Notes: a model not told the origin generated them from the letters alone. Shown: positions 18,676 through 51,768, counted from the stretch's first letter. The stretch: DNA of 64,000 bases from Selaginella moellendorffii (GCF_000143415.4 NW_003314366.1:384997-448996), one strand, 5' to 3'. Made by a program: numbers and translations.

Positions 18676-20218
18676 TCACTCGCGATGGATCTTCAAACCT
18701 TTGAGATCTTCCAAGAATGCTTGGACGCCACGAAACGATTTCCCATGCTCTTTGTCCATGGCTTTCCTGGCAAGGATCTTCAAGTTCTCCACTCTCTCCT
18801 TCATTTCCTTCCCCTCTTCGCTATCCATCACCTTTCTTATGCCGTCCTCGATCTCTCCTCGCTCGATCAATCCCTGCATCGCGGTCTTGGAGAATCTAAC
18901 CCCGATCTTCCAGTCCTCCACTATAAACTTACAGTTGGTGTTTTGCTCGACCCCGTAAGGCCACCCCAGCATTGGAATCCCGTGTGTGATGCTCTCCTGG
19001 ATGGAATTCCATCCGCAGTGCGTAAGAAACGCTCCCATGGAGGGATGGGCGAGGACTCGCAGCTGTGGCGCCCAAGAAACGATGAATCCCTGGTTCTTGG
19101 TCCTCTCGCAAAACCCATCGTAAGATTCGGTGGACTGTCCGCCGACCACGAGCTCGGATCGAATCACCCACAAGAATGGCTTCTTCGATGCCTCGAGAGC
19201 TCCCGCGAGCTCCTCGAATTGCTCCACGCTCAGCACCGCGATGCTGCCAAACGAGATGTAGAGCACCGATCCAGGCTCCTGCTCATCCATCCAGCCAAGG
19301 CAATCCTCGTTCTCGGGGCGAAGCACCACATTCTTCCTGGAATCGTCGAGCAAAAACTGTGGCCCCGCGGGGATAAATCTAGGTCCGAGCTCGCTGGCCA
19401 TGAAATCGAAGGTGGGCGCCTCGAGGTCGTAGAAGGAATTGACGAGGACCCATCGCGCGCGCTTCACGACGGGGGAGCGTTTGATGCAAATCTCCTTCCA
19501 CACCTTCTCGCCCTGCATGTAATCGGGCACATCGGCCAGGCGGAGGGGCTTCACTCCTCGGACGTAGTCAATGATCACGGAATTGGCCTCCTCCGGGGAA
19601 GCTCTCCCTGGGTACGAATCGGGGAAGAACAGGCGAAATTTGAATAAGGGGAGGAGGGAAAGAACTAATGTTCATGGTCGTACCTCTGCTATGAAAGATG
19701 TGATTCTTCTCCAGAAGATCTAGAATGTGGTACTCAAAGCTCGACCATCCCGCGGTTCCCGACCAGAGAATGATCCTGGGGATACCAAACACGTCCGCCA
19801 CATCCTGGGTCCAATCGCAGAAGTAATCCGAGATGATGCAGTTGACCGGATCACCCTCCTCGCCGAGCTTGCGGATCAAATCCTCGAGGCCGCCCGGGAG
19901 CTCTCGCGCGGATGCCGTGAACCAGTCCCCCACATTTCCCAGCGCGTGGGCATCGGCTCCTAGCGGGAGCTGCCACGAGTATGGGATGGAATGGAGGCGC
20001 AGATCTTCCAGCCCCGCCGGCGCCACCCAGTGCTTGACGAACTCGTCGTGGAGGCTGTCGACATTGACCAAGGAGATCGTGAAGCTTGGATCTCGAGCGA
20101 TGAGCTTGCAGAGATGGATCATTGGGGACATATGGCCTTGCGCGGGCAGGGGAACGACCACGACATGGATCTTGCTACTGGGGGAGGAAGAATCGCTAGA
20201 ACTTTGCAAGGATCTCAT
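18676..20218 (-). CDS. UDP-glycosyltransferase (UGT copy 3), exons 20218-19684 and 19607-18676
   Basis: PAQGHMSP and PSPG box ending PYGVEQ; 76-bp intron. Confidence 0.95.
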
Positions 20219-20680
20219 GATTTCTTAGGTCTCTTCCCACTCTGAGAATTGATCCATGCGGATCTTATAACCATAGAACCATCACTTTATCCACGAGAAT
20301 CTTGCCCAGCCAGTTGGTTGTTTTCCATTTGATCGTACACATCGACCAGCTTTTGCAGAAGTTGTGTTTATTATGAAACCTTTAAATGCCTTTCCCGGGC
20401 AAGTGTGACTTTTCATTGTTCCAGTTGTCCTCTTAAGTTTTAGTTTAGCATCTATGAAGCTTTCTTTCAATCATCTATTTTAAATTGTTTCTTTATGTTT
20501 TTCAAGTTAGTTCTAACGACGTAACACTGCTCGTTTGGATCTAGTCAAGTAAAACGCTTGCTCGTCCAAAATGCCCAACTCTGGCAAATTATATGAGAGG
20601 GCCAAATCCCTAAAACTAGGGTTGTTGGGAGGAGCAATGCCGCCATCGCCATCGCGGTAAGTCTCCTCTCTCTCGATCGA

Positions 20681-23293
20681 ATGCCGGTCTTCCGGCCGTC
20701 GCCGATCCTAGCGACGCAGCGCCTGTCACAGCTCGCGCCGCTCAAATGGTTCAAGGCGCCGTCCCGGACAGCCGACAAGCCCGTGTACGTGACCAAGCGG
20801 CTGCTCGAGGGGGAGAAGGCGCGGGATACCTATGGAAGAATGCGCCAGTGTGGGATCCGGCCGTGCGTGCCAGTGATCGTGCTCGCGATCAAGGCTTGCA
20901 GCGAGAGATGGGATCTCATGAGCCTCCACAGCGATCTCGTCGCCACCAAGAACGATCGAGACGTGTCGGTGGCCAACACTCTGATCGACAGCTACGCGCA
21001 CTTTGGCCTCGTCGCGGATGCTCGCAAGGTCTTCGATGGGATCCAGTGCCGCGACGCCATCTCGTGGAACACCATGATCAAAGGTTACGTCCAGAACGGC
21101 GATGGCAAGGGAGCTCTCGAGCTCTTCTCGCGGATCCAGGAAGATGGTCTTCTCCCAAACGCGAGAACTTATCTGGCAGCTCTCCAGGCCTGCTCCATGG
21201 TCGCAGCTCGAGAGAAAGGGACAGTGCTCGAAGGTGGCAGGCTTGTCAAGGTGGCTACTTTGGAAAGAGGAGCAGCGATCCATGCCGAGATCGTCAAGAA
21301 CCAGTACTCCGGGGACGTGTTCGTCTCCAGCGGTCTCGTGGATATGTACTCCAAGTGTGGAAGCCTGGAGAATGCCAAGCTCGTCTTCGACAAAATGGAG
21401 TTCCACGACGTGGTTTCCTGGACTGCGATCATCATGGGCCACTGTAACTGCGGCGAGGCCGAGCTCGCTCTCGCCTTGTTCTCGCGGATGAAGGAGGAAG
21501 GCTTCATTCCCGATGGCACAACTTTCGTGGCGGTTCTCAAGGCTTGCGCGAGCTTGGCAGTGAAGGAGACGAGTGGAAGTCATGGAGAAGTGGCTCTGGC
21601 GAGCCTGGAGAAAGGGAGAGCGCTCCACACCGAGCTCAAGAAGCTGGGGATCAAGTCGGACATGGTCTTGGAGAGCTCGCTCGTGGATATGTACGTCAAA
21701 TGTGGGAGCTTGGAAGATGCAAGGCTGGTGTTTGAGAGGATGCATCGTCGCGACGCACTCGCGTGGACGAGTATGATATCCGGAACTGCTCAAGCTGGGA
21801 ATGGCGAGCTCGCTCTCCAGATGTTTGCTCGCATGCAAGAGGAAGGGATCAGGCCAGACGCTCCAGCTTTCGTCGCCGCTCTTGGTGCTTGCAGTAGCCT
21901 CGCGGCGAGAGAAGGCAAGCGTGTGGAAGGGAAGTTCAAGAAGAGCCTCGTCTTGCAGAAAGGCACGGCAATTCACTCTAAGCTCGCAAAGATAGTGAAG
22001 CTCCCGAATGCTTTTGTGGAGAATGCTCTCGTGGATATGTACGCGAAGTGTGGCAACATCCAGCGAGCTCGGGAAGTGTTTGACGCGATGCTGGAGCGAG
22101 ATCTAGTCTCCTGGAACTCCATGATACTGGGACTTGCACAAAACGACGAGTGTGAACCGGCTCTCAAGTACTTCTCGGTCATGCAGCACGAAGGCTTCAA
22201 GCCAGGCACCAGGACGATTGTCGGGGTGTTCAAAGCCTGTGCGGCGATGGTGGCTTTGGAAACCGGTCGAAAGTTTCACGTCGAGGCTCGCATCTCCGGA
22301 CTTGACAATGATCCCACGGTGGCATCCTCGATCGTGGACTTCTACGCCAAGTGCGGTAGTATGAGCGATGCACAAGAGGTGTTTGATTCGCTGGAGACGA
22401 GGGACTTGGTAACTTGGAACGCCTTGATCGCGGGATACAGCTGCTGCGGAGACAATGAACGAGTCCTGGAACTTTTGGTCAGCGCAGAGAAAGAAGTTGG
22501 CTCAGTGAACGGCATCACTCTCCTCTGTGTTCTCGCGTCCTACAGCCATGCTGGCCTGGTGGAGGAAGGCAAGAGCTTCTTTGAGACAATGAACTCTAGA
22601 TATGGTGTCCAACCCGGCGTGGAGCACTGCACCAGCATGGTGGATCTTCTGAGCCGAGCGAATCGTCTGGAAGAGGCAGCGAGCATGGCCAAGAGAATCT
22701 CTCGCGATTCAAGCAAAGTCGCGTGGATTACAGTGCTGGGGGCTTGTTTCAAGTGGAAGAACGTAGAAGTTGGCAAGCTTGCGTTTGACTCGGTACCGAA
22801 GGAGGATGGCGATCCATCGCCTTTCGTGCTCATGTCGAATATCTACGCCGGGGCTGGGATGTGGGAGCAGCGAGCAGCAGTCCGAAAGGCGATGGCGACG
22901 AAGTCTTTGAGCCGAGCACAGGGACAGAGCTCGTCATGGGTCGATGCCGCTGGAACGGTTCACAGATTTTCTTGGGAGAAAGAGAAGAAGATGGAGCATC
23001 CTCAAATGGAAGAGATTGTCGCGAAGTTGAGCCTTTTCCTGGGTGACAAGACGAGGAACGATGATCAAGTTTGCGAGCACAGCGAGAGATTTGCTGCTGG
23101 TTGTGCTCTGGTAAACACAGCGGCTGGAACAGACATCCGGATCTCCAAGAGTGGAAGAGTTTGCGGCGATTGTCACGACGTTTTAGCCGCCATCTCCAGA
23201 CAAGGAGGAGGAGGCCGTTTGGTCGTCTGCAAGGACATAAGTTGTGTCCACGCTTTTCGAGACGGGCACTGCTCCTGTGGAGATTTCTGGTGA
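20681..23293 (+). CDS. PLS-class PPR protein with DYW-type deaminase domain (organellar C-to-U editing factor), 870 aa, intronless
   Basis: Repeated LVDMYxKCG / DVVSW motifs, E domains, HSE..CGDCH and terminal CSCGDFW. Basic, Ser/Pro-rich N-terminus resembles a transit peptide. Confidence 0.95.
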   Translation: MPVFRPSPILATQRLSQLAPLKWFKAPSRTADKPVYVTKRLLEGEKARDTYGRMRQCGIRPCVPVIVLAIKACSERWDLMSLHSDLVATKNDRDVSVANTLIDSYAHFGLVADARKVFDGIQCRDAISWNTMIKGYVQNGDGKGALELFSRIQEDGLLPNARTYLAALQACSMVAAREKGTVLEGGRLVKVATLERGAAIHAEIVKNQYSGDVFVSSGLVDMYSKCGSLENAKLVFDKMEFHDVVSWTAIIMGHCNCGEAELALALFSRMKEEGFIPDGTTFVAVLKACASLAVKETSGSHGEVALASLEKGRALHTELKKLGIKSDMVLESSLVDMYVKCGSLEDARLVFERMHRRDALAWTSMISGTAQAGNGELALQMFARMQEEGIRPDAPAFVAALGACSSLAAREGKRVEGKFKKSLVLQKGTAIHSKLAKIVKLPNAFVENALVDMYAKCGNIQRAREVFDAMLERDLVSWNSMILGLAQNDECEPALKYFSVMQHEGFKPGTRTIVGVFKACAAMVALETGRKFHVEARISGLDNDPTVASSIVDFYAKCGSMSDAQEVFDSLETRDLVTWNALIAGYSCCGDNERVLELLVSAEKEVGSVNGITLLCVLASYSHAGLVEEGKSFFETMNSRYGVQPGVEHCTSMVDLLSRANRLEEAASMAKRISRDSSKVAWITVLGACFKWKNVEVGKLAFDSVPKEDGDPSPFVLMSNIYAGAGMWEQRAAVRKAMATKSLSRAQGQSSSWVDAAGTVHRFSWEKEKKMEHPQMEEIVAKLSLFLGDKTRNDDQVCEHSERFAAGCALVNTAAGTDIRISKSGRVCGDCHDVLAAISRQGGGGRLVVCKDISCVHAFRDGHCSCGDFW

Positions 23294-23322
23294 CTTTGCT
23301 GCTTTTCTCCTAGGGCTTTTTC

Positions 23323-24886
23323 ATGGATCCGGCTTCAGTCCAAGGTATGCTTGATGCTTCGTTCTCTGATGTGAGACTGACTCTTTGTTTTGTTTTGGGT
23401 GGTGGTGTAGCTAACAGAGCAGCTCAAGCTGAAGAATTGGAAGCTCTCCGCTACATTTATGGAGAGGATATCGTTGTTCACGAGCACGAACACTTCTGTG
23501 AGGTATTTGGTTACGTGGTGAGCGGTTTTGAGCCAGCCAATTTGGTATCCTTTGGCAGATTTCTGTCTACCCGAGTGAAGAAGAGTCGGGAGGTTTGGCT
23601 GTGAAGCTTGGCGTTTATTTCCCGGACGAATATCCGTCACACAGTGAACCGACTTTTGAAGCTGAAGCCGCGTGGCTGTCGGAACAGGACCGCGACAAAG
23701 TTGTCAGTGGATTTCACGAGTTGTACTCGAGCAGTGACGGAGAAGTGATTGTTTTCAAATGGATAGAGTGGATGAAGGTAGGTAGAAGAATCTATGTCGT
23801 AGCTTACGTCTTCCTCTCTGGTTGTAGGAACAACACTGGCTATGGAATTGCGAGAAACGGACGGCACTTGCTGCAAGTACTAAAGAGACAGGTACGCTAT
23901 TTTTCCAGCCAAAGCAAGCTTTTGTCTTGAGTTTTGTCTCTCTTTTTTTCTTCCTTGCCAGTAAACGATTCGGGGGAATCAGCCACTGCAGCAGCTCAGT
24001 TATTCCAGCCGTAAATCTCGTTTTTCGTTTCCTGCGGAATCTCTTTTAATTTTCTGTAGTGTGCTGCGCGCGCAGGTTTGAAAAGCCCGAGGATGTTCCG
24101 GCTGAGCTCAACGTGGAGGAACTGGACAAACTCCATGGCATTATTCACGGGTGTCCCTTCACAGAGAAGAAGAGTACGTGATTATAAAATATACGAGCGT
24201 CGTTGTTGTTTCGTTGATTGCGTTGCTGAGATAGTTGTCGTGACTATCAGGTACTTTCCAAGCGCACCTGGCACCCGTCCACTCGGCCGATGAGGTGGAG
24301 ACGGTAATGGAAGCACTTCTGCGAAACAGGAAGATTTCAGGGGCAACTCACAACATAATGGCCTTTCGCATCGTTCTTCCCGACAAAAACACTGTAAAGT
24401 CGACGTGACCCTTGGCGATAACTGCGATAACTGCGGTGTTTGTCAAGGGATTGCTAACTTCTTTCTCTCGCCTTGCCGTGTCAGGTACTTCAAGACTATG
24501 ACGACGATGGAGAAACCGCTGCTGGAAACCGGCTATTGCATCTCCTCCAGATCGTAGGCGCCATTGACGTGGTAAGCTATAACTGCAGCTTTTGTTTTCC
24601 TTGTTCCCCACGGAGATTCCAATCCAACAAAGCTTCCACTGATTGATTTTATGCAAGGTGGTGGTGGTCTCGAGGTGGTTTGGAGGGATCCTACTCGGTC
24701 CGGACAGATTCAAGCACATCAACAATGCCGCACGGTCTCTCCTCGAGAGTGGTGGATACATAAGAGATTCCCGGAAGAACAGCAACACCTGTTCGTCCAG
24801 CAAAAAAGGTGGGACTTCTTTTTCTCGGCCACTGTTCCGCGAGTGCTGACTCCTCCATTTTTGTTCTCGTAGGGAAAGCTCGATAG
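23323..24886 (+). CDS. IMPACT: IMPACT-family protein (RWD + UPF0029 domains), multi-exon
   Basis: Spliced reading MDPASVQANRAAQAEELEALRYIYG, FPDEYPS, KSTFQAH, ATHNIMAFRI, DYDDDGETAAG, VVVVSRWFGGILLGPDRFKHINNAAR. Confidence 0.9.
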
Positions 24887-25472
24887 TTACTATCGGGGAG
24901 ACACGAATACAAGGCTTTGCTGGTCCAACAGTCAGTCATCGAGATCCCAACAACAATGTCTCTCTACACGTAGAGAAGTACGATTTTTTCGGACAAACTA
25001 GTGCGTCACATTTTGATTTGATAACGTCTAACAAGATCCGTGAAAGCTTTTGACACCTATTTATCATTACTTTACAGGCAGGTCCATCTCTCTCCATCCA
25101 TCTTAACAATTATAATATTCTTCCATGAACCATCGTCCTCCTCTGGGAACTCTACGGAAGATTTGATATTGTCTCTCTTTTCTCGGGTCGTCTCACACTC
25201 TTTTTTTTTCCAGCGATTCTGCTCAGGATTTATTCTCGAGCTGCTTCCGGGGTGGGGAGGCCATACCACTGCAAAAGATCTGGGAACAGGAGAAAAAGGA
25301 AAAGGAGGAGAGAAGGAAATCAGCAGTTCTGTGAAGAGGACGATCTTTCCGCAGTGGAATCAGTGCAGTGAACAAGTTGGTGATGAAAGCAGCGGTTTTT
25401 TTCGACGAGCTCTCCTCCCTCGCTGCTGTTTCTCGAGAGATGCCGACTAGAGAAAGAAAGCTCGGGCCAAGA

Positions 25473-26228
25473 TCAGGTTCTCCTCCGGCTGGCTGGCTCC
25501 TTCTGCGCATTGTAGTAGACTGCGCCGACTGGAAGTCCCAGGAAGTACTCCTGCGCGAACCAACGGGTGCTGAAGTTGTTCCTCATGAGCGGTGGAAGCA
25601 TGAGAACTGGTCCCATTTGCCGGAAGACCACGAAGATGTACCTATGGATTCCAGTCGGGGGCTTGGGGCCGATGTACTGGAGGATCTCTCTCCCTGGAGA
25701 TGGAGTAGCGAACAAGAGAGAAAACCAAGCTGGAACTCACGTGACAATGCAAGGAGTGATCATACCTTGGCTAGCGTCGGCTCCACCGGGGATGTCCGCG
25801 ACGATCCTGGGTAGGAAACTCCAGATTCATATCGAAGGAGAAGCAAAAATGGAAGCTTTGGAACTAACCAGTGCACCCATTCTCGCATTGATGGCTCGCT
25901 GGGACTCGGAGCATCCGGGTCGACCATCACCTGTTTAAGAACAAAGGGTGGTAGCATCAAGTCCTCTAGCTCTGGAGAAGAGATCGAAAGAAGAGAAGGC
26001 GGTAGCTATGGAGGTGAGATTGATTACGAGAGTGTAGAGCGCGCCTTCCTCGTGAGGAGATCCAACTTGGACAATGGGGCGAGCTTGAGTGGCTGAAGGC
26101 TTGAGCTCGCAGCCATTGTTGACTTGTTTGCTACCATAGCAAACGCTCATATCCACGGCCGGAACGAACATATCCAGCACGTCGCCGATCACTCGCCCTA
26201 GCACCAGCGGATCCATTGATCTCCCCAT
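25473..26228 (-). CDS. MFT: MOTHER OF FT AND TFL1-like PEBP protein, 4 exons
   Basis: [30 protein letters not shown] (MFT-type Trp), GIHRY and NAQKEP (MFT-type Pro). Confidence 0.95.
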
Positions 26229-26575: not shown

Positions 26576-26839
26576 TAGGTGAGATCCTTTCTATTAGGGC
26601 TACTTGGCTTGATTAGATAATTTTAAAAAATCTATAAATGGAGAATTTCAAAAGTAATAATTATTGAGTTTAAAAATATCTCATCAGAATTTATTTAGAA
26701 TAATGCTATTTGGTATATACATCAATAATTGAAAAACTACACTCATATTAAACTTAAATTTAGACCTTAATAAAGTGAAATTCACTCCCATATTTATTAT
26801 GAAAATCTGAGGCCTAAACCCACATTATATGTTATGGGT

Positions 26840-28500
26840 GTAAATTCATAAATGGATATTAAATTAATAAGTATAAAAACTAATTAAATACATAATGATT
26901 TGTGTTTATATTTTAGTTTTAAACCACATTAAAATATTTTTTAATTACTAATATTTTATATAATATTATATATATTAGTTAATTTTAATTATAATTTACA
27001 TATATATATATAAGTTTTACTTAGAGATATAACACTTAGTATGACATTGATATGATTTAAAAGATTAAATGTGCACATTAAATATTACTCAGATATACCC
27101 AGCAAGGAACTTTTTGACTTGAAAATTCATAACTGTAGCAAATGAAAATGTATGTAAATTAAATATAAAATGAAGGATGTGCAACTTGATCTTAGAAAAT
27201 AAATTAAAAAATTATAATTATGAGAAAATATCAAATTTTGGTTTGTTTTAGCATATATCTAAGTATATTCTATGATATTCTTTAATCTATCTTTCTGTTA
27301 AATGCTAATATTCTTATTTATGACTAATACACACTCATGATCACTCTTCCTCTTCCATTTTCTACAGACAAAATCTTAATCAAGTGCATATCCAAATCAT
27401 GAGTTTTACACATTCTTTATGCTCATCACATTCATTTAAGAACTTGTCTATAGACAGCATATTCCATAATAGAGCTCTTGATCTAATGAGCATCATGGAT
27501 AAGTCATAATTAAGCCAAACCTTGAGAACACAATCTATCCTTCATGGGATTCAAGCTTTGATATGCTCCTTGAGCATCATGTAGTACTAGAGGATCTTTG
27601 TGAAGATCTGAGATTTAGTACAACAAGGCAATCATGGGGTGGAGGTGGTCTTCTGTTGTGGCTGACTTTTAGGCAAGCTGAAATCATCAAAAGGACTCCT
27701 GAAAATGATCAATTTTGACAGGGAACAAGATAAGATAGTATGTCTTGAAGCTTAGTAATACTCTAATTGACTTGAGATTCACATATTTCTTAGCTATGAA
27801 ATATAGGAAATAAGTATTTTTATTATTTTTATCAATGTTCATGGCTTTGAGGTTATAACAACATGCTAGAGTGTTTGCCAAATGCCTTAACTTATTTAGT
27901 TTTTATCTAAAAGTGTTGACTTTTACAAGTCATTGGATTAAGCCCTCTATGATCTTGCGTGGATCAGTCTCCCTCAGGCAAAAATACCATTACAAAAAAA
28001 ATTTCAGCCTCCTATTCTTGAGCTAGGTATAAGAAGTATCATATTACATCTCCTGTTCCTTGGGAAATTTGAGTTCAAATATCATATTCCTCCCTTGCCA
28101 AGAACTTCATTGATGATCTAGTATTGCCCACCAAGGCTGGAGCTAAGTGCGAAGCTTAGCATATTTAGACCAATTTTCTGATTTTTTTGCATTATGTTAA
28201 CTATGTTCTAAGGAGGCATATAAATTGCTATTAGATTTGCTTACTTTTAGGAAAGAAAATGTTATCTAAGCCAAATGCTGATTTAATACTATATTGCTTA
28301 ATCAAGAGGTTATAATTTATTATAAGCAATCAAATAGAATGGCTTGAAAAACCTTTTATTAAAGTTTAAGATAAAGGAAAAAGGCTCATGAATAAGAGTG
28401 TATCTTTCTTTTTTCAATTGGTGATTATTCTTGATATTTGTTAGATACCAATCAAATTTAGTTTAGTCCATTGAGAGGATAATCTCAACTTTTAAAAACT
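26840..28500. repeat. AT-rich segment duplicated (diverged) at ~29310-30675; both copies end in an eroded Cassandra-LTR fragment (28370-28440 and 30560-30630)
   Basis: Shared blocks such as AAGGAACTT.TTGACTTGAAA.TTCATAACTGTAGCAAATGAA and ATGAATAAGAGTG. Confidence 0.85.
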
Positions 28501-31913: not shown

Positions 31914-34264
31914 TTAAGAACTGTCAAGACGAGGAAGAAATGATGGAGGAAAAGTAATGCTGAGGCTAATAGATGTGTTCTCATGTTCCTTTGCTCGAAG
32001 CTTATACCTCCAAATTTGAAGGCTGTCCCACGTGATACCTAAAAATGTGACCCAAAAGCCAATAAACACACCGCAGCCAAATGCCCACACTGAAGCTTCA
32101 TGGAAGAGGAAGTCTTTCTCCCAACTTTTGTGACTTGCAGGGTGCTCTTGATCCTTTGTTGCATGGCCACAAGGAGACAATGGAAACCCACAAAGGTTCT
32201 TATTGCCTTGGAATGCAAGTGGAAATCGAGTGTTGATATTGTAAGCAGTTGGGACCAATCCGCTTAAGTTGTTGAATGAAACATTAAAGGCAGACAAAGG
32301 CAATTCCCCAAACTCGTTTGGGATCCTGCCTTGGAGCATGTTCCACGACAAGTCAAGCGACTGAAGCTTTTTCAAGCTGGAAAGATTGAGAGGTATGGCA
32401 CCGGTGAACTGGTTGTGCGAGAGGTTGAGATGCATTAGTCCAACCAGTTGCCCAATTTCTTCTGGGATGACGCCCTCGAGAGAGTTGCTTGAGATGTCTA
32501 ATGAAGTCATGTTGTTTGAAACAACGATGGTTGTCCGATCAAACTGTAACCTTGCGCCATTGACCGTGATAACCAGGTTCAACTGAACCCCTGTATAAAT
32601 GCCAAGATTCAAATCCCCACTAGTGTTGCCCTTGAAACCTTGAAACTTCCAAAGCTTGCCTGGCAGCTGCCCTATGAGCTTATTGTTTGACAAATCTAAA
32701 ATTTGGAGCCAAATGAGATTGGTGATGCAAGCTGGAATCTGGCCAAACAGCTTGTTGTATGCAAAAGACAATATCATAATTCCAGACCAGCTGCAAGTCT
32801 CTTGAGGGATCTCGCCTGTGAAATGGTTCCTACTATAGTCCACGACTCTGAGGTAAGTGGAATTCAAGCTTTTGACTGAAATGGTGCCACTCAACATGTT
32901 GTTGCAAATGACAAAGAAGACCAAACTTGTTAAGTTACTCAAGTCAAGCCGCACCTCACCCGTGAAATTGTTCTGCGCAAAGTTGACAACCTTGAGCTTG
33001 GAGCAATTCCCTAGCCTTGAGCTAATCTCTCCCTGGAACTCGTTCGTTGAGAGATCCAAGTAAACCAGGTTAGTGCATGCACCAAACGTTGGCATTTTGC
33101 TCCGTATCGAGTTTCCGTGGAGGTCGAGATAGCCAAGATTGGTGCATTTGTCGAGTGGAGGAACTTCATTTCTGAGATAGTTGTCACTCAAGTCAAGTGT
33201 CTCAAGACGATCCAGCTGGCTAATGCCTTTTGGAATGCTTCCATCTAGATAGTTTTTGTTGAGGTGCAATTGCTGGAGAGCCTTGATCTCTGTGATTGAA
33301 TGCGGAATGCTTCCTGTCAGGCTGTTAACGTCCAAGCGAAGTAGCACGACAGGAGAAGACGCATTAAACATGGGAATGTTTCCTGTAAAGTTGTTGTAAT
33401 GGAGCTCTAGGTGCGTTAGAGATGGCATGCCCACCATAACATCAGAAGGAATCGATCCGTTGAGAAAATAGTTTCGCGATAGTCCCAACCACTTTAGCCT
33501 ACGAAGACCAGCAAAAGAGCCAGGTAATGGGCCATATAGAAGGTTGTCAGACATGTCTAGAAATGTGAGGCGCGAAAGGTTTCCAAGAGTGATTGGTATA
33601 AGCCCCTCCAAATTGTTCTTAAGAAGTGATAACCTTTCCAATTTCTTGAGCTTACCCAGCGATGGAGATATAGAGCCTGTTAAGGTGTTGTTTTCCAGAT
33701 TGAGGAACTGCAGCTTGGAGCAGTTCCCAACACTCGATGGAATAGACCCGCTCAAGAAATTATCAGATAGCCAGAGCTCAGTGAGATTCTGGAGCTGCCC
33801 TAATGTTGCTGGAATATGGCCAGTCAATTGGTTCCCTCTCAAGTTGAGCTCTGTGAGTGAGGAGCAATTTCCGAGGGTGGTAGGAATTTGCCCCGTTATT
33901 TTGTTAAACGATAGATCGAGCTCTGAAAGATATGAAAGCTGCCCAAGCCTTGGCGTGAGAGTTCCCACCAAGGCGTCATCGAGATCCACAGAGGATAGAT
34001 GTATGGACACTACTTGGCGTTTAGAATTGCAACTAATGCCTCTCCAGCTGCAAATCCCACCCTTGTTTCCTTCATGCCAGTTAGAAAAGGTAGAATTGCT
34101 TTGCAACATGCCTTGCTTGAACTCCAGTAGAATTTCCATGTCCATGATCTTATACAAAAGAAAGAACACCTTAGGAGTTTCATTTCAGAATCATGTAATC
34201 ATACCTCAGCAGAAAGATTCATGCCAAGTGCGAAGAGAAGTACGATGCCCCAGTGAGAAAACAT
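31914..34264 (-). CDS. LRR receptor-like protein (no kinase); exon 1 34264-34205 (signal peptide), exon 2 34148-31914
   Basis: MFSHWGIVLLFALGMNLSAE joined in frame by a 56-bp GT-AG intron. LRRNT (CSWRGISC), many plant eLRRs, island domain, GNKNLCGFPL cap, GxxxG TM helix and a short tail. Confidence 0.92.
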
Positions 34265-41576: not shown

Positions 41577-44500
41577 ATGGTAAGTCGAGCAAGCCTCCAT
41601 CTTGTTCTTCTTGTTCTTCTTCTTTAACGCGGTCGCCTTGCCAGTACGCGATCTCAGCTATCAACGAGAGTGAGAATTCCAAAAGCCGATTGGAGCCTTT
41701 GGCCCCCACAAAAGAAGCGCAGGTTAGAATCTCAGGTTAGAAAGAATGTAGCTAGTTGTTTTAAACTTAGTTTTTGTGACATAGGAGTCTCATCTCACGA
41801 AGCTCTACCAAGATGCTTTGTCAAGTCTGCAAAGCGGGGACCTGGCAAATGCTCGGAGTCTCTTCCAGGCGATCATCCAAGATCCTTTGTCCATCAAGTC
41901 ACAGGTAACTTCAAACACTTTAGGCTTTTCTTTCCAAATTTGTTCTTTGAGTCCTTATGATTGTTTCTTCGCTGTGTTTCTCCATCTAGCGAGGAAAATC
42001 CGATGCAATGCTCCACTTGAGGTGAGTGAAAAAAGAAAAAGCTTGGACCTTGATCATCTTTTCTCGTGCAGGTTCTTAACTTACAGAAACTTAGCCGAGA
42101 CTTACGTGAAGCAAGGGCCAGAGTTTTCCGCTGAAGGTCTTCACTATTACTTGCAAGCTGTGGCGATCGACGATAAGGATGTCGTCCTTTGGAATCGTCT
42201 GGGAACACTCGCCTGCTCGCTTGGAAAGCTCAATATCGCACGCAAAGCGTTTGAGCAGGGTCTTCATTGCAGTCCACGACACTGTAAGAATATATTCATA
42301 TCTTTCGTGTGGAAGATCTTACCAGCAGTTCTATTCCGACCAGGGAGTTGCATGGAGAAACTTGTCGAAGTTTTGATCGCCATTGGAGACGAGACAGGCT
42401 GCATCTCAGTCGTGAAACGTCTGCTTAAGTTCCATCCTTCGCACCCTCGCGCGCTTCATATCAAGAGCGTTATTGAAGGCAAGCACCATGGCACTGGCAT
42501 TGCGGGGATGGACGGTTTGGAACCGACGCATACCAACCTTTCGTTTCAACGGAAGAGGAAGCTCGACGTTGTCCCGGACACATCCAAGAGGAAAAAAAGG
42601 AAGCAGTACTCGGTCCAGTTAACGCTACAGGAGCCGTCTTGGCTTCTCCTTGTCAAGGCTACTCTGGAGTCACTGCAAAATAGGCAGCATGGGAAGGTTT
42701 TGAAGAGCGAAGAGCTCAAAGAGAAGAACGGCTGCTATCTTGCCAATTCTCGCGTTTTCTTCTCGGTGCAAGGTCCCGATGGTGGTAGCAGCGGCCAGAC
42801 TTCTGCCAAGCTGACAGATGATCTTCTTCTCAACAATAGTGGCTGCGACACGGTCTCTCTTGCCGAGAAGATAAGCCCGAGCAAGCTCTCAGAAGTCGAA
42901 GACAGCCATGCACACGAACGTCGAAGCACTCGGCTACGGAGCCGGATCAAAGGTGAGGAGGCGGTGGCCGATTGTCCCAAGAGCTTGACACAACTTCTCG
43001 AGCCTTTCATCATCGACAGCTCGCGTTTAGAGGTCGAAGTCGATCCTGAGGCTTCAGTTATCACGCACTGCGAGCGAGTAGACGGCTCCTTGGCATACGC
43101 GGCTTCTGCTTCGTCGTCTTCACCCGAGGGCTCGGCCTCTTGCGTCACTGTGGAAGCTAGAGAGGTGACGCAGTTCATGCAAGACTATGCGAACAACAGT
43201 GGACTATATCACGTTGGACACGCTATTCTCGAGCGCGTTTCTAGCAGTGGTATAGACTGGAAGGAGCAAAGCGAGCTTCTTCTCGAGCTGGAAAAGTATA
43301 CCAGGCACTGGGGGAACGGCAGGAGTTCTAGGTGCAATCTCTTCCTGGCCGAGTTATACTTGGATGCTGCGTCTTCTTCTGCCGAGCCAGGCAAGCTCCT
43401 CGACCACTGCAACTACAACATATGCCGGGTTATCGAGTGGTCGGCTCTGGAAGTTGATTGGGACCAGGAAAATAATGCTCTACGAAGCAGCAGCATCGAA
43501 AGGGATGCCGGGTGGATTTTCTGGGCTCGGTTTCATTGGGTCTACGGGCGTTACTGCATGCTCGCTGGTAATCCAAAGAAAGGATTCAGCGAGTTTCGAA
43601 AGTGCCTTTGCTTGCTCCAAGCACAACGCGAGCGCTACACGGCGATAGTTTTGCCTCACTGCAAGATGGACAAAAGGATATCGTTGGAAATGGCCGAGCA
43701 GAAACTATACGAGTTTGAAGTTGGAGATTTGCTGAAAAACACGGTGGCCAAGCTGGACAAGGAAGAGAAGTATTTGGAGCTCATTAAGGTTCTTGAGCCG
43801 GCACTCTTCTCAGACAGAGCATCCAAAACGTTCAGCGGCAAGTGCACCGATGCTATGCAATCGCAGGAGTTCAAGGCGCTCGGCATGCTTATATCTGCGT
43901 GTCAACGAGTGAAGCCCGCCAACTTTGTGATCCAGCTGAAGTGCCACCTCAAAAGGCTGGAGATCTTCTGTCACTGTGCTGGAGTTTTCGTCAAACCCGA
44001 CGACGATCTGTCGCTCTCGCCAGGGAGCGCTGCAAGCGGTGAGATGGACGACGACAGGGCCAAGGAGCTTAGAACTTGGAGCAAGAAAATCGCCGAGGAA
44101 GTCAGGCTGCTTTCACGGTGTGCCGCTGCTCTCAAGAAGGCGGACTCCTCTAGACATGTCGACTTACCACTGGGACGTCTCCAGAATGCTCTCCTGGCGG
44201 TTCTGATCCATTTTGGATCGGGATTCTCCTGCAGAAAGCACTCCAACTCGAGTCTCAGCGAGAACCTGGAGACGAGCTTCTTCGTGGACGCGGCCATTGC
44301 ATTTTGCAGGGTTCAGCAGCTTCATCCAGCATTGCCCGTGGAGCAACAGGTACACACATTTTTTCTTACATTCATATCACTCACGATCCTTCCTCTAGGT
44401 GGGTCTTCTTGTAACAGTGCATGACATACTGGCTGATCGGGGAGTTTGCGCGGCCGGAGCTTCGTGTGACGAAGGAGAAGGCTCGTTTCTAAAGATGGCT

Positions 44501-47500
44501 ATCAAGCATCTCTTGTCGCTGGAGGTGATGCTGAAGCAGCGGGATGCTGAGAGCGAGAACGCACGTACACAAGAAAGCACAGCGACGAGTGGCTCCGTGA
44601 GAAGGTCCGAGTCACTCACTGATTTATCCGAGAAGAAGATTTGCGAGAGCGAGGACCTCGAAAGAAGGAAGGCTGGCGGCCTGGACAAGGCGCTGGATCA
44701 GTGCTTCTTCTGCTTGTATGGTCTCAACCTCAAGTCGGACCTCGAGTCAGGAGCTTCCAGCGATCTGGCCTTCCACAAGACACCGAGTGGTGGCGACTTT
44801 CAGTCGAAAGAGCAATGTGCCGCCGTGCTTCAGTATGTTCTTCCCTACGCTAAAGCGTGCTCGGTAAGTCTTTGGCTGTTTCTACTCTTGTGCTCGACTG
44901 ATGGATTCGATTCCACCTGCAGAAAACCGGCCTGGGAAAGCTGCGAAAGGTTTTGCAAGCCGTTCGTAAGCAGTTTCCTCAGCCACCTTCAAACATCCTG
45001 GTGGGAAATGCCGTGGACGCCTTTATGGACGACTTGTCTTTTGACGAGGACAAGTTCTCGGAGATGGTGATCAACAGAACCAACGTCGACGAGCTTGTCA
45101 GCTTTGCTTTTCCCAAGCAAGAGGAGAATCCCGCTACTGCCGTGGTAATCTATTCCACTCCTACAGAGGAACCAAAGAGTGAAGAGGCTGAAGCAAACAC
45201 CCAGTCTTACGTGGAGGTGTACCAGAATCTCTATTTCCTGCTAAGTCAGGTGGAGGAGACGTCGCCGACCGATAGATCGCCTGGTTTCGTGTTCACGAAG
45301 GAAGGGGAGGAGTTTTTTGAGCATGTCTCGAGCCTCTTCAAATACGATCTTCTTTACAACATGCTGCGGTTCGAGAGCTGGCACAAACTCGCAGGCATTT
45401 ACGACGAGGTATTCTTCTTTGTTTAAGACTGATGATCTGATCTCTGTGTGATCTTTTTGGTTGTAGGAAGTTGATCTCCTGCTTAACGACGGTAGCAAGA
45501 ATGTAAATGTTCTCGAGTGGCGAAAGAACGCGAGGCTAACGTCCAGAGTGGAAACTAGCCGGAGACGAAGTCGACGCTGCCTTTTGATGAGTTTGGCACT
45601 AGCTCCTCAAGCAAAGCACGAGGTGAGTACTTGTTTCAAGTCCAAATTTGCTGTGATGCTTGATGATGTAGTTCCAGATTCACGAGCTTCTGGCGTTGGT
45701 CTATTACGAGACTCTTCAGAATACAGTTCCTTCGTATGATCAACGCTCTCACGTTCAAAAGAAAGACGCTCTTTGGACTTCGAGGTGCCTAAATGCGATC
45801 AAGCACTGCGAGATAGCATATTCACTGAGGTATTTCCTTCTTTATATCTCTCTAGATCTCGTTTTTGAGCTTGTGGTATGCAGACCGGATTGGACGCATT
45901 TGCTTTATCTTGGCAAGCTCTCTGAGAAACTCGAAAAGCCCAGCGAAGAATCCTTTAGCTTGTACAAGAGGGCCATTGAGCTGAATCCTTCAGCTGTTGA
46001 CTCTTTATACCGTCTGCATCGCTCACGGCTGAAGCTGCTTTGCAAAGGGCGTTATCACGACATGCAAATCATCGAGGTACTTTGTTTTCCATGTAGCGAG
46101 ACTATAGAAGTTTTTATGATTTCCTTCCCCAGACTGTGGCCAAGTTTTGTTATTCAAGTTCTACAGAAGAGCTCGTCAACAGTAAGCTCAAGCAACCAGA
46201 CGAGCAAGTTGGCAACGAGGAAGCTTATCAGAGTGACATAGCGACGGCATGGAGAGCTCTTTTCAAGGACTGTATTTCCGCCATGCAGGCGTGCACTGAT
46301 GGAGAATTAAAGCACTTTCACAAGGCTCGTTTCTGCATTGCCCAAGGACTCTACTGCCGAGCGGAAGAACAGGACTGGGAGAGAGCCAAGGAAGAGCTCG
46401 CCTTTTGTTTCCGATCGAGTCGATCGCTCTTCACGATAAATATGTGGGAACTCGACGGCGTTATCAAGAAGAACAAGTAAGTTTTGTTGCAAGGAAAACA
46501 ACCATTTCACAGGTCTTTGTTTTTGCAGGCGCAAGGCAACCGGCCACACTTATGCCAAGAAGACTTTGGAGCTCGGGCTCCCAGAAAGCTCCCGAAAGTT
46601 TATCACATGCGTTCGCAAGTACCTGTTACTCTACTTCGTTCTCTGCGAGAAGGCTGGAGATTATGTCACATTGGAGCGTGCATATTCCACACTCCGCATA
46701 GACAAGAGGGTAAGAGAGTAGAGAAAAAAATTCGCGTTTTACGTGATCTTCCGATGTCTTGGTCTCGGTTCTTTCAGTTCTCCATTTGCCTCGAAGATAT
46801 AGCAAGCGCAGCGCTTTCATCCTACGTGCATGCTTTGGGCGCAACCATCACTCAGGCCGAAAGCTCTTCGTCTTCGTCCTTTAGTTCCTTGCAAGGCCTT
46901 CTCGAAAGAATGTTTAATCTCTTCATGGATCACGGGATATGGTGGGCGGAGACGTCCGAGTCAGAGGGACAAGAAGTGGCTGTCTACTGGTAAGAAAGAT
47001 CCATTGTTTGTTTTTTTTTTCCAAAGATCTAAGCTCTTTTCCTTCAGCTACATCCATCGCTACCTCCATTACCTGGAGAACGACTGTCGCGTGGACGCAC
47101 TGGAGCTCGTGAACGAGAGGATACGGAAGCGTTTCAAGCATCAAAAGCTAAGCAATCCTCACTTCTCACAGATTTGCCGGCACGCCACCGTCGCCTGGTG
47201 CCGGGCTCTCTGCTCGGCCCTCGCGTCCGTCACCCCGCTCGAGAGGTTGCCGGACCACACCCCGCAGCTCATCGTCGACTTGCAATACGACGTGCTCCTC
47301 TTCAGCCCCTACGACGCCGACACCACGAGCAAGATCTCCCAAGTCTCTCCATCTCCAGCAGCAGCCAGAGCGGAAGAAAGCGCTGCTCCTCCGGCCTCCG
47401 CAGCCTACATCTCCCGCATCAAAGCCGTGCCGATCGTCCAAGTCTCTCCGGACAACGCCGAGAAAGCTCACAGCTACCTCCGTGCCACCTTCGTGTTCTA

Positions 47501-47913
47501 CCGGGAAGTCACGTCGGGGCCATTCCCGAGCGGTATAAACCTCTTCATGGCATCACCCCTGGGAGCAGCGTCCACCGAGCCAGCGGCAGGCATCCAAGCG
47601 ATCCCGGGGTTTGATCCTCTCGACCTCAGCACTCCAAGGAAGCTGCTGCTATGGGCTTTTGCGCTGGTTCACGGCCGAGCAGCGAGCATAGCCGACGTTG
47701 TCAAGTACTGCGAGGAGCAAGCCAAGGTAAACCAAAGTTCTGCCAGCTTTTTCGCTCACTCTCGAGGGTTTGTTCTTCCAGACGAGGCTCAAGAAATGGC
47801 CTACTGCCGCGGCTACCGCGGCCTCTCACGTACCATCGCCGGAAAAGCTGGCGTGCTCCATAGCAAAGTGTGCCGAGCAGGCTGTCGAGATGGAGCAAGA
47901 AACCATGGTTTAA
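41577..47913 (+). CDS. CABIN1: Calcineurin-binding protein 1 (HIRA histone chaperone complex subunit), many exons
   Basis: M|[19 protein letters not shown]-terminus, TPRs ([28 protein letters not shown]), QCFFCLYG and HFHKARF. Confidence 0.9.
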
Positions 47914-47976
47914 AGTGACTATAGCTCAAGATCACTCCTGGGAACAATGGACTCAATGGTCTCGTGGTTTTGATTG

Positions 47977-50055: not shown

Positions 50056-51225
50056 CTAGTTACGGCGGTCATCTCGATTCTCCGGCTGGTCGCTGGCCGA
50101 GGAGCTTCCATGCTGCTGCTGCGACGAAGACGACGATGGAGGAGCAGGAGCTGGGGCTGGTGGCGGAGACGAAGACGAGCGAAATGGCCATGGAAACTGG
50201 AACGAGACTCGCCTGTTACTCCGGGGCTCCTCCGCCGGTCTCGAGCTCCCGCTGTCCTGGTGGTGCTGGTGACCATCCAGATTTAAGTTCGCTCCAGATC
50301 CCCAGAGAGTGAAACCACGACCAGGGCCGCCGCCGCCACCGCTAGCAGCAGCACCACCGATCTCGGCATTCGCAGCCCGGCTGGCTTGAGCCCCGCCTCG
50401 CCCCGGTGCAGTGTTGTTATACTCTGGATCGTCGGTCGGCATCTCGTGCCTGCAAACCGGGCAGGAGTTGTGCTGCGCCAACCATGGTAGGATACAGTCG
50501 CCGTGGTAGAGGTGCTTGCACGGCATCTGTCTCACCTCCGACCCCAGCTCAAACTCGTCCTTGCACACCGCGCACTGCCCACCGTCACCGCTCATGTGTT
50601 CGCTGGTGATGCTCACCACTGGCATGGCTTCGATCGCTGTCTTGGACGCCGGTGGAGTGCCATACCTGTTGGGATCATTCTCTGCGAGTTGCTGGATCAG
50701 CTGGTCCAGGCCCGGCCCGAAGAAGTAGTCTCCAAAGTTTGCCGGCAAGCGTCGAGCTCCAGTGCCCGTGTCGAAGAACACCTCCACGTTTCCACCTCTG
50801 CCTCCAAACATGTTCTGGACGAGGATCATGGGATCAAGTGGATCCGCGTGGTCGGCGCCGTCTCTTTGATTCGCACCAGCGCTGTTGTTGTTGTTGTTGT
50901 TGTTGTCTCGACTTTGCTGGAGAATCGCGGACATGGCCTGGAGAACCTGGAAAATTGGAGGATGACGAACACCTTGGTTACCAGCGGGAGGAGTATCGCC
51001 ATCAGCAGAGATACCTCTGGTTTCCCTCCCAGATCCCGGCTCACCACCAAAGATGACGGTTGGTCTCTGGCGATGCGGCGGGAAAACGATCCCTGGCGAG
51101 TTCTCGATCTCCTCGATGAAGCCGCCATTGCAGAACGGACAAAGGATGTCATTCCCGGCGTTGGGCCTCACGGACGTGTGGCACTGATGGCACCAGTAAG
51201 TGGCAGGTTCCAGCGCCGTGGCCAT
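50056..51225 (-). CDS. RING-H2 E3 ubiquitin ligase with N-terminal zinc ribbon (BTL/RNF126-like)
   Basis: YWCHQC..CPFCNGGFIEE, GDYFFGPGLDQLIQQL and CAVCKDEF..CKHLYHGDCILPWL..CPVCR. Confidence 0.95.
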   Translation of the reverse strand: MATALEPATYWCHQCHTSVRPNAGNDILCPFCNGGFIEEIENSPGIVFPPHRQRPTVIFGGEPGSGRETRGISADGDTPPAGNQGVRHPPIFQVLQAMSAILQQSRDNNNNNNNSAGANQRDGADHADPLDPMILVQNMFGGRGGNVEVFFDTGTGARRLPANFGDYFFGPGLDQLIQQLAENDPNRYGTPPASKTAIEAMPVVSITSEHMSGDGGQCAVCKDEFELGSEVRQMPCKHLYHGDCILPWLAQHNSCPVCRHEMPTDDPEYNNTAPGRGGAQASRAANAEIGGAAASGGGGGPGRGFTLWGSGANLNLDGHQHHQDSGSSRPAEEPRSNRRVSFQFPWPFRSSSSPPPAPAPAPPSSSSSQQQHGSSSASDQPENRDDRRN

Positions 51226-51768
51226 TCTTCCAATCCGATCCAATCCAACGCAATTCCCCTCAACTCGATCCACTAGCGCCGACGCATCGATCGAGTGCTC
51301 TACACCCTAAGCCCGGATTCCTTCCTCGGCCCTCACTCAATCCGCGCTGGAAAAAAACGCAACGAATTCAGTGCTAGGGAAATCAGCGCCACGCGCGCCA
51401 GCGCCGAGGAGCTGCCTTGTCACTCGCTAGGCGAGAAAGGAGGAGCGCTTACCCGGAGTGCGTCGAATGGATCCAGGCGCGTGCCATGCCCTAGAAGCAA
51501 ACCCTAGAACCCCTTTCTCCATTGCTATTGCCGTTTCCTTAGCATCATGTGGCATGGCCATGATAGTTTAATGGCACGAATCACAAATGGGTGGGTCCAT
51601 GCCCAGCGTTTTGTGGTGGCAAGCATGGTGGTGTCATGCCCCCATCGCACGGACACATGGCTATAGAGGTGGAGAGTAGTAAAAAAAGTTTTTTAACTAT
51701 CCTGTGAATTTCCTTTGAATTTTCCTGTGTATGCGAATTTTTACACTGGCCCAGTGAAAGTGTTCTTG

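Follow-up and report, generated by a model that had tools for sequence, protein, structure and literature searches.

Contiguous RNA across adjacent PPR-DYW and IMPACT reading frames, with flanking splice-like signals not detectably used, in Selaginella moellendorffii

How does the conserved protein IMPACT come to be translated when an 870-codon reading frame lies just 29 nt ahead of its start codon? The question is raised by a locus on scaffold GL377670.1 of Selaginella moellendorffii, which we analysed in a window of 64,000 nt. Here, a PPR-E-DYW reading frame and the unrelated IMPACT gene are arranged head-to-tail on the same strand, the PPR stop codon (TGA) ending at 23293 and the IMPACT ATG beginning at 23323, which is the gap given in the first-pass annotation. 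The second haplotype has the same arrangement with identical 29-bp spacing, and both haplotypes therefore carry two complete same-strand frames at the short distance characteristic of dicistronic mRNAs.

The two genes and their surroundings

The upstream reading frame (20681-23293, plus strand) is intronless and encodes 870 amino acids. Pfam identifies tandem P/L/S-type PPR repeats (PF01535, 1.2e-68; PF13041, 1.7e-65), a C-terminal E motif (PF20431) and a DYW deaminase domain (PF14432, 5e-19); in the translation, the zinc ligands of the HxE and CxDCH type (HSE and CGDCH) and the terminal DFW are intact. Judged by its sequence, the product is a PLS-class PPR-E-DYW protein of the organellar C-to-U editing-factor type. 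It shares the PPR array, the E motif and the DYW deaminase with other land-plant factors of this class; what is unusual is the position of the gene, immediately next to IMPACT. By eye, the N-terminus looks like a transit peptide, with many R, S, P and K residues and few acidic ones. The reading frame is intact in both haplotypes, which differ by seven synonymous and five non-synonymous changes. Its closest non-allelic relative is just 45% identical, which leaves no orthologue usable for a synteny comparison. A retroposed origin of the editing factor, as suggested by the first-pass annotation, found no support, given that the stop codon is followed by no poly(A) remnant and that a close paralogue is missing.

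The IMPACT coding region (23323-24886, plus strand) comprises ten exons at 23323-23344, 23411-23502, 23559-23777, 23828-23891, 23962-24010, 24076-24173, 24251-24393, 24485-24571, 24658-24808 and 24873-24886, all defined by GT..AG joints in RNA contigs. The nine RNA-confirmed introns measure 50-91 nt, in agreement with the short local introns that had been noted before. The 312-aa product, whose assembled coding sequence has the length of RefSeq isoform X4 (P0287), contains an RWD domain (PF05773) and an Impact_N domain (PF01205, UPF0029) and belongs to the IMPACT/YIH1 family, the members of which bind GCN1 and restrain GCN2. Orthologues from moss, fern and Klebsormidium are 51-61% identical to it and align over its full length, start methionine included, and on this alignment ATG 23323 is the orthologous IMPACT start. 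In RefSeq, the PPR protein is listed as isoform X1 (XP_024521940) and IMPACT as isoforms X2 and X3 (XP_024521941, XP_024521942), while IMPACT of the other haplotype is labelled X2, X3 and X4. Because accessions and isoform numbers run consecutively, these records suggest that NCBI models PPR and IMPACT as one Gnomon gene.

Upstream of the pair lies a UDP-glycosyltransferase (UGT) gene on the minus strand (18676-20218; called gene L001:3996-5538, PF00201 UDPGT), which has its start codon at 20218, is transcribed away from the PPR gene and is covered by an RNA contig at 19981-20191. The two genes are separated by an AT-rich divergent intergenic and promoter region (20219-20563; GC ~0.38-0.43). 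Downstream, the IMPACT 3' UTR (24887-25200, plus strand; end approximate, with contig ends at 25084, 25127 and 25200) is convergent with the 3' end of a PEBP-family gene on the minus strand (25473-26228; called gene L001:10793-11548, PF01161). Between 20000 and 25500, a search for a processing signal between the cistrons returned neither an Rfam match (E up to 0.1) nor a tRNA-like element.

RNA across both reading frames

RNA data came from four RNA-type assemblies (runs X1, X2, X5 and X8) of four independent studies, as contigs rather than reads. The 5'-most contig ends lie at 20564 (run X2), 20610 (run X1), 20663 (run X5) and 20699 (run X8), which places a transcribed leader of the PPR gene at 20564-20680 on the plus strand. 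No contig of any of the four runs covers 20361-20547, and this gap argues against DNA contamination. The PPR frame is tiled in its entirety by end-to-end overlapping contigs in runs X2 and X8, and the listed pieces cover all but 20564-20609 in run X1 and all but 21364-21471 in run X5. In every one of the four assemblies, a single contig starting at 21334, 21855, 22031 or 22048 runs from the PPR frame through 23293, 23313 and 23323 to 23342 without interruption, and is then joined 23342^23409, 23500^23557, 23775^23826 and at further IMPACT joints. The data thus support that PPR and IMPACT are present on contiguous RNA beginning in the leader upstream of PPR, and to this extent the earlier proposal is supported. 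Several candidate joints inside the PPR frame (20990/21113, 21364-21367/22025-22034 and 21553/22334) were taken as paralogous PPR contigs and not as splices, since they are not GT-AG and extend only 20-24 nt on one side.

We consider that a read-through, or dicistronic, PPR-IMPACT RNA produced from the promoter region upstream of PPR, with IMPACT made from a shorter RNA not seen here, has about an even chance of being correct. The two genes would then form one head-to-tail transcription unit driven by the AT-rich divergent region at ~20219-20563, and the main RNA would contain a leader with upstream open reading frames (uORFs), the whole PPR frame as an exon, the 29-nt spacer (23294-23322, plus strand) and the ten IMPACT exons without their nine introns. 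The k-mer depths of PPR-only and PPR+IMPACT contigs are close to one another in three runs (13.5 versus 13.1; 11.8 and 10.1 versus 9.9; 17.2, 15.3 and 9.1 versus 14.2), which favours a joint RNA but is suggestive only, contig depth reflecting abundance poorly. The presence of both frames on one and the same molecule is what we infer from contigs, which cannot prove that one molecule covers the two.

The same contigs could also arise from overlapping, independent single-gene mRNAs that were merged by de Bruijn assembly, with the PPR poly(A) site located in early IMPACT and IMPACT starting from a compact promoter in the 3' end of the DYW-coding region or in the pyrimidine-rich spacer. We regard this explanation, the main rival, as plausible in so compact a genome, although less probable than the joint RNA. 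That a contig across two genes does not demonstrate a single transcript is illustrated by run X2, in which the PPR+IMPACT contig (record 10) continues into the convergent PEBP gene. The claim that 29 bp leave no room for a promoter is a weak argument in this genome, given that very short spacing is normal here and that merely 46 bp separate the divergent coding regions at another PPR locus (L007); a genome so tightly packed must often have promoters lying within adjacent genes, which counts against the joint RNA. Separate mRNAs would moreover allow IMPACT translation without a special mechanism. They would also avoid a second problem of the joint RNA: a stop codon far upstream of exon junctions makes a transcript a target of nonsense-mediated decay, and the PPR stop followed by nine exon junctions should attract it. 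Lastly, the spacer is CT-rich in the manner of a plant Y-patch or 5' leader, and the moss IMPACT leader is similarly CT-rich just 5' of the ATG.

Against overlapping mRNAs, the near-equal depth in three runs would have to be a coincidence between independent genes, although this is weak evidence, and neither a contig break nor a form retaining intron 1 is listed near 23293-23410. An AT-rich or TATA-like stretch is absent from the last 200 nt of PPR. From the PPR stop to the end of IMPACT, an intronic TATAAA is the only canonical poly(A) signal, an observation that weighs little since plant poly(A) signals are degenerate.

Splice-like signals flanking the PPR frame

The contigs also bear on the other part of the earlier proposal, namely that splicing selects between the two proteins. 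According to this model, PPR resides in a 2657-nt leader intron of IMPACT (20657-23313); intron retention would give rise to PPR, and splicing of 20656^23314 to IMPACT. The signals underlying this model are real features of the sequence. A perfect consensus donor, G|GTAAGT (20656-20662, plus strand; G at 20656, GT at 20657-58), is positioned 24 nt 5' of the PPR ATG, and the spacer contains the pyrimidine tract CTTTGCTGCTTTTCTCCTAG, with 13 of 15 pyrimidines and an acceptor-like TAG ending at 23313, 20 nt past the PPR stop. The stop codon itself (TGA 23291-93) sits in tgGTGAC, a branch-like motif, and the region therefore has the GT..AG ends, donor, pyrimidine tract and branch-like element of an intron. 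The uORF described previously is present as well: ATG 20637 encodes MPPSPSR and terminates at TAA 20658-20660, inside the donor. It forms the in-frame tail of a 29-codon uORF starting at ATG 20571 (20571-20660, plus strand).

Chance occurrence of the donor and acceptor pair at a single locus is unlikely. GGTAAGT is found seven times in 128 kb on both strands, which gives P ~0.006 for the 117-nt leader; for a YAG behind 15 nt with 13 or more pyrimidines, P is ~0.012 in a 29-nt spacer. These values refer to a pair chosen after the fact by the earlier reader. CT-rich plant leaders also increase the number of acceptor look-alikes. The second haplotype has both signals unchanged, its spacer differing by one SNP, at 23297. 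Signals of this quality are improbably good for unused sequence and count against the joint RNA. The leader-intron model is further consistent with RNA starting upstream of the donor, would supply a translatable IMPACT mRNA and is compatible with the one-gene modelling in RefSeq.

However, the defining joint, 20656^23314, is absent from all four RNA assemblies, in which contigs are continuous across both candidate splice sites; at the donor, contigs of run X1 (20610-21363) and run X2 (20564-21363) pass through 20656 unspliced. Contigs may lose rare variants, which leaves room for low-level splicing, but a minor isoform retaining the intron at 24394-24484 (~30%; depth 6 versus 15.5) was kept and broke contigs in run X1. 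The IMPACT 5' exons are no deeper than PPR. Splicing would carry both uORFs (ATG 20571 and ATG 20637) across the IMPACT ATG out of frame, as had been pointed out for the latter, and this would repress IMPACT. The intron would also be ~30-50 times the local size. In moss IMPACT mRNA contigs (L004-L006), the leader measures at least 162 nt and contains no PPR; genomic leader structure is not visible in mRNA, and these leaders neither show nor exclude an ancestral leader intron. One of these moss contigs (L005) retains intron 1, and its upstream part is a divergent gene rich in Pro, Gly and Tyr; the moss proteins P0170 and P0173 resemble a Ceratodon protein. Taken together, we judge the leader-intron model unlikely, though it may persist as a minor route: the consensus donor and acceptor bracket PPR but are not detectably used, and the splicing choice of the original proposal found no support in the four assemblies.

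Two other uses of these sites were considered. Short introns from the donor at 20657 to AG at 20711, 20719 or 20731 would have the usual local length (55-75 nt) but would place the uORF out of frame with PPR and are absent from the RNA. A PPR-IMPACT fusion from a donor in the DYW region to the acceptor at 23313 would be out of frame, and no such joint was found.

Translation of IMPACT and relation to known two-gene transcripts

On the joint RNA, the PPR-DYW protein would be the product of the 5' cistron, translated via leaky scanning or reinitiation beyond the short uORFs. For IMPACT, leaky scanning would call for a short first frame and few AUGs, and neither is found: 58 ATGs lie between 20548 and the IMPACT ATG, the latter included. 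With 57 AUGs and a frame of 870 codons ahead of it, IMPACT is out of reach for scanning ribosomes. IMPACT would therefore most likely be translated from a shorter RNA that starts in or just before the spacer and requires no new junction; a start of an IMPACT-only RNA was not seen among the RNA contigs.

Similar constellations have been described. In Arabidopsis, read-through RNAs that join neighbouring genes on one strand are minor species, kept down by nonsense-mediated decay and found alongside normal single-gene mRNAs (Kurihara et al. 2022, PMC9768141). As in Arabidopsis, the Selaginella locus is a land-plant nuclear locus with RNA across two unrelated same-strand genes, the introns of the downstream gene are spliced, the upstream frame is expected to be the translated one and the first stop lies far 5' of the exon junctions. 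In contrast, the joint form was recovered by the assemblers in all four Selaginella data sets, together with neither an IMPACT-only form nor an intergenic splice. Polycistronic nuclear mRNAs of green algae carry small upstream frames that are bypassed via leaky scanning (Gallaher et al. 2021, PMC7896298; Dueñas et al. 2025, PMC11892635). They likewise combine two unrelated same-strand frames, a very short gap (29 nt here) and apparently one capped, spliced RNA, but the length of the first Selaginella frame and the number of AUGs mean that leaky scanning cannot serve IMPACT. A third comparison is with same-strand genes nested in a host intron, given that, in the leader of the downstream gene, a consensus donor precedes PPR and a good acceptor follows it; unlike such nested genes, PPR is an exon in the observed RNA. 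In the literature searched, no paper describes intron-nested PPR genes or their co-transcription with IMPACT. Two further PPR loci carrying the RefSeq isoform X1 label were sampled, one with a same-strand abhydrolase gene 313 bp downstream (L007) and one with a 679-aa gene overlapping PPR (L008), and neither has a layout like that of PPR and IMPACT.

A more far-reaching idea is that, in Selaginella, PPR editing-factor genes as a rule occupy housekeeping-gene leaders. A single promoter would then give rise either to an organellar editing factor or to a cytosolic protein unrelated to it, in this case the translation regulator IMPACT, through regulated excision or retention of a PPR-sized leader intron or through unconventional translation of the second cistron. 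We hold this to be improbable; if true, the unused-looking consensus splice sites would constitute a condition-specific switch.

If the RNAs merely overlap, the locus would be an ordinary product of genome compaction and mainly a caution to annotators, RefSeq having seemingly merged both genes. Stable nuclear mRNAs that carry two genes seem to be a rarity among land plants, where nonsense-mediated decay usually removes them. Should the joint PPR-IMPACT RNA prove to be a real and abundant single molecule, it would represent such a stable two-gene mRNA and would point to one route by which the huge PPR family of Selaginella gains expression in a genome that leaves hardly any room between genes.

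A compact PPR-IMPACT locus

The window belongs to Selaginella moellendorffii scaffold GL377670.1. Its PPR ORF (20681-23293, plus strand) comprises 870 codons without an intron. The product is a full-length PLS-type PPR protein that carries both an E motif and a DYW deaminase; in the translation, the HSE and CGDCH residues and the terminal DFW are all intact. IMPACT starts at the ATG at 23323, 29 bases past the PPR TGA, and is followed by a convergent PEBP gene. On the other side, a called UDP-glycosyltransferase gene lies on the minus strand with its ATG at 20218, which makes the AT-rich interval at 20219-20680 a divergent intergenic region. Every coordinate of the first-pass annotation proved correct in the sequence, and a further ATG at 20571 is in frame with the upstream ORF it described, lengthening this ORF to 29 codons; from position 20548 to the IMPACT start inclusive, there are 58 ATGs. 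No RNA family or tRNA-like element was found in 20000-25500. The second haplotype (scaffold GL377701.1) is ~99% identical and has the same order of PPR, 29-bp spacer, and IMPACT. Comparative tests are limited, and the PPR has no close orthologue.

Directly past the PEBP gene, the sequence turns sharply AT-rich (26600-27400; GC 0.18-0.23 vs ~0.5 nearby). The window further contains genes for an LRR receptor-like ectodomain (31914-34169, minus strand), a RING-H2 zinc-finger protein (50056-51273, minus strand), and a UVSSA/DUF2043-like protein (55613-57298, plus strand), as well as an open frame of 868 codons (41818-44424, plus strand) that has no Pfam hit up to an E-value of 1e-5 and an ORF of 362 aa (46830-47918), also without a Pfam match.

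The RNA-supported exons of IMPACT encode a 312-aa protein, equal in length to RefSeq isoform X4 (P0287), which aligns end to end, start methionine included, with IMPACT from moss, fern, and Klebsormidium. This alignment shows 23323 to be the true orthologous start, with no coding exon missing upstream. IMPACT is alternatively spliced; RefSeq isoforms measure 376, 368, 312, 309, and 294 aa, and the joint 23888^23959 (intron region 23892-23961) is absent in two of the RNA assemblies considered below (X5 and X8). The reachable IMPACT transcripts of other plants are moss-like only and have leaders of their own of at least 162 nt, without a PPR. In one moss-like RNA contig (L005; 32-634 on the minus strand and 774-1018), IMPACT is preceded by a divergent gene for a small Pro/Gly/Tyr-rich protein, and the first IMPACT intron, which has the same position as intron 1 of Selaginella, is retained. 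The best 120 IMPACT homologues come from mosses, ferns, a conifer, green algae, one fungus, and many animals, with no flowering plant among them, and IMPACT may be missing or divergent in angiosperms.

Contiguous RNA from PPR to IMPACT

A search found the stretch in 20 sequencing runs, and contigs of four of these (X1, X2, X5, and X8), each from a different study, were placed on 19800-25400 (5601 letters). That these runs are RNA was a guess at the outset; it is borne out by the absence of all nine IMPACT introns, removed at GT..AG borders, by the lack of any contig over the intergenic interval 20361-20547 in the four runs, and by assembly totals of just 25-37 Mb each.

Each of the four runs has one contig that begins within the PPR ORF (at 21334, 21855, 22031, or 22048) and continues unbroken up to 23342, past the stop codon of the PPR, the proposed acceptor, and the start codon of IMPACT; it is then joined at 23342^23409, 23500^23557, 23775^23826, and further positions. 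The remaining PPR ORF is tiled by other contigs, which reach 20564 in X2 and 20610 in X1 and, in both, run unspliced through the proposed donor. In X2 and X8, the listed pieces overlap one another without a gap; no piece is listed over 20564-20609 in X1 and 21364-21471 in X5. Odd joints within the PPR were rejected as splices, being non-GT-AG with sides of 20-24 nt, and were attributed to paralogous PPR contigs. Given that contig mismatches to the window sequence match second-haplotype alleles, both alleles are expressed in the joint form. PPR and IMPACT are a head-to-tail pair on contiguous RNA.

RefSeq labels XP_024521940 of the second haplotype as PPR At2g13600 isoform X1 and gives XP_024521941 and XP_024521942 as isoforms X2 and X3 of IMPACT; on the window haplotype, the IMPACT labels are X2, X3, and X4. 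The consecutive accessions and complementary isoform numbers suggest that NCBI Gnomon treats PPR and IMPACT as one gene, a model that would not be independent of the RNA continuity because Gnomon draws on the same kind of data.

Splice-like signals around the PPR

The first-pass annotation had proposed that the PPR fills a leader intron of IMPACT (20657-23313), removal of which would yield the IMPACT mRNA. Its observation is confirmed and its interpretation partly supported: there is one RNA stretch with two unrelated ORFs that starts upstream of the PPR, but in the recovered RNA the PPR is an exon rather than a removable intron. The corresponding joint 20656^23314 is not listed among the assembled contigs of any of the four runs. 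A minor isoform is visible in X1, where retention of intron 24394-24484 (depth 6, vs 15.5 for the spliced form) interrupts the main contig. By analogy, we infer that a 20656^23314 isoform would have been visible had it reached at least one quarter of the level of the unspliced RNA.

The signals themselves are uncommon. GGTAAGT occurs 7 times in the two strands taken together (128 kb; P ~0.006 for the 117-nt leader), and a YAG with 13 or more pyrimidines among the 15 positions before it has P ~0.012 for the 29-nt spacer, which makes both at a single locus improbable by chance, although the pair was picked after the fact. CT-rich leaders are normal in plants, and the moss IMPACT leader is likewise CT-rich immediately 5' of the ATG. 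Both signals are the same in the two haplotypes, an agreement that adds little weight given how similar these are. The consensus signals flanking the PPR are apparently unused, and we regard their use in a minor or condition-specific route as improbable.

Readings of the joint RNA

The reading we favour, at even odds, is that the main product is a dicistronic or read-through RNA, of a kind already known, from a genome that is very compact. The depths of PPR-only and PPR-plus-IMPACT contigs are near-equal in three runs, which fits this reading and is suggestive only, contig depth being a poor measure of abundance. The closest known kind is the read-through polycistronic transcripts of Arabidopsis, which arise at 271 loci, are degraded by nonsense-mediated decay, and have a rarely translated second ORF (PMC9768141). 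The polycistrons of green algae likewise have a short inter-ORF distance. They depend on leaky scanning past upstream ORFs of small size (PMC7896298; PMC11892635), a route that cannot apply to PPR-IMPACT. In the literature searched, we found no PPR gene described as lying within an intron or as being transcribed together with IMPACT.

The main alternative, which we hold to be less probable than read-through, is that no molecule holds both ORFs and that the assembler fused two overlapping mRNAs. The spanning contig of X2 extends even into the convergent PEBP gene, and a true dicistron, in which the PPR stop precedes nine exon junctions, should undergo nonsense-mediated decay (cf. PMC9768141). 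Extreme genome compactness favours overlap as well: at another PPR-DYW locus (L007, 4954-5001), just 46 bp separate the PPR start from that of a divergent Gaa1 gene, leaving little promoter space. Elsewhere in this genome (L008, 2864-7799), a 679-aa gene without a Pfam match overlaps a 914-aa PPR gene (RefSeq label 'At4g04370-like isoform X1') by ~2 kb on the same strand, and may be a further locus yielding two unlike proteins.

For the joint PPR-IMPACT RNA, scanning over an 870-codon ORF would not deliver ribosomes to IMPACT, which would thus have to be translated from some shorter RNA. Such an RNA might start within or shortly before the spacer; being junction-free, it would leave no trace in contigs. 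Given that a splice would leave a junction and none is seen in the contigs, an internal start is, by elimination, the likelier candidate route to IMPACT.
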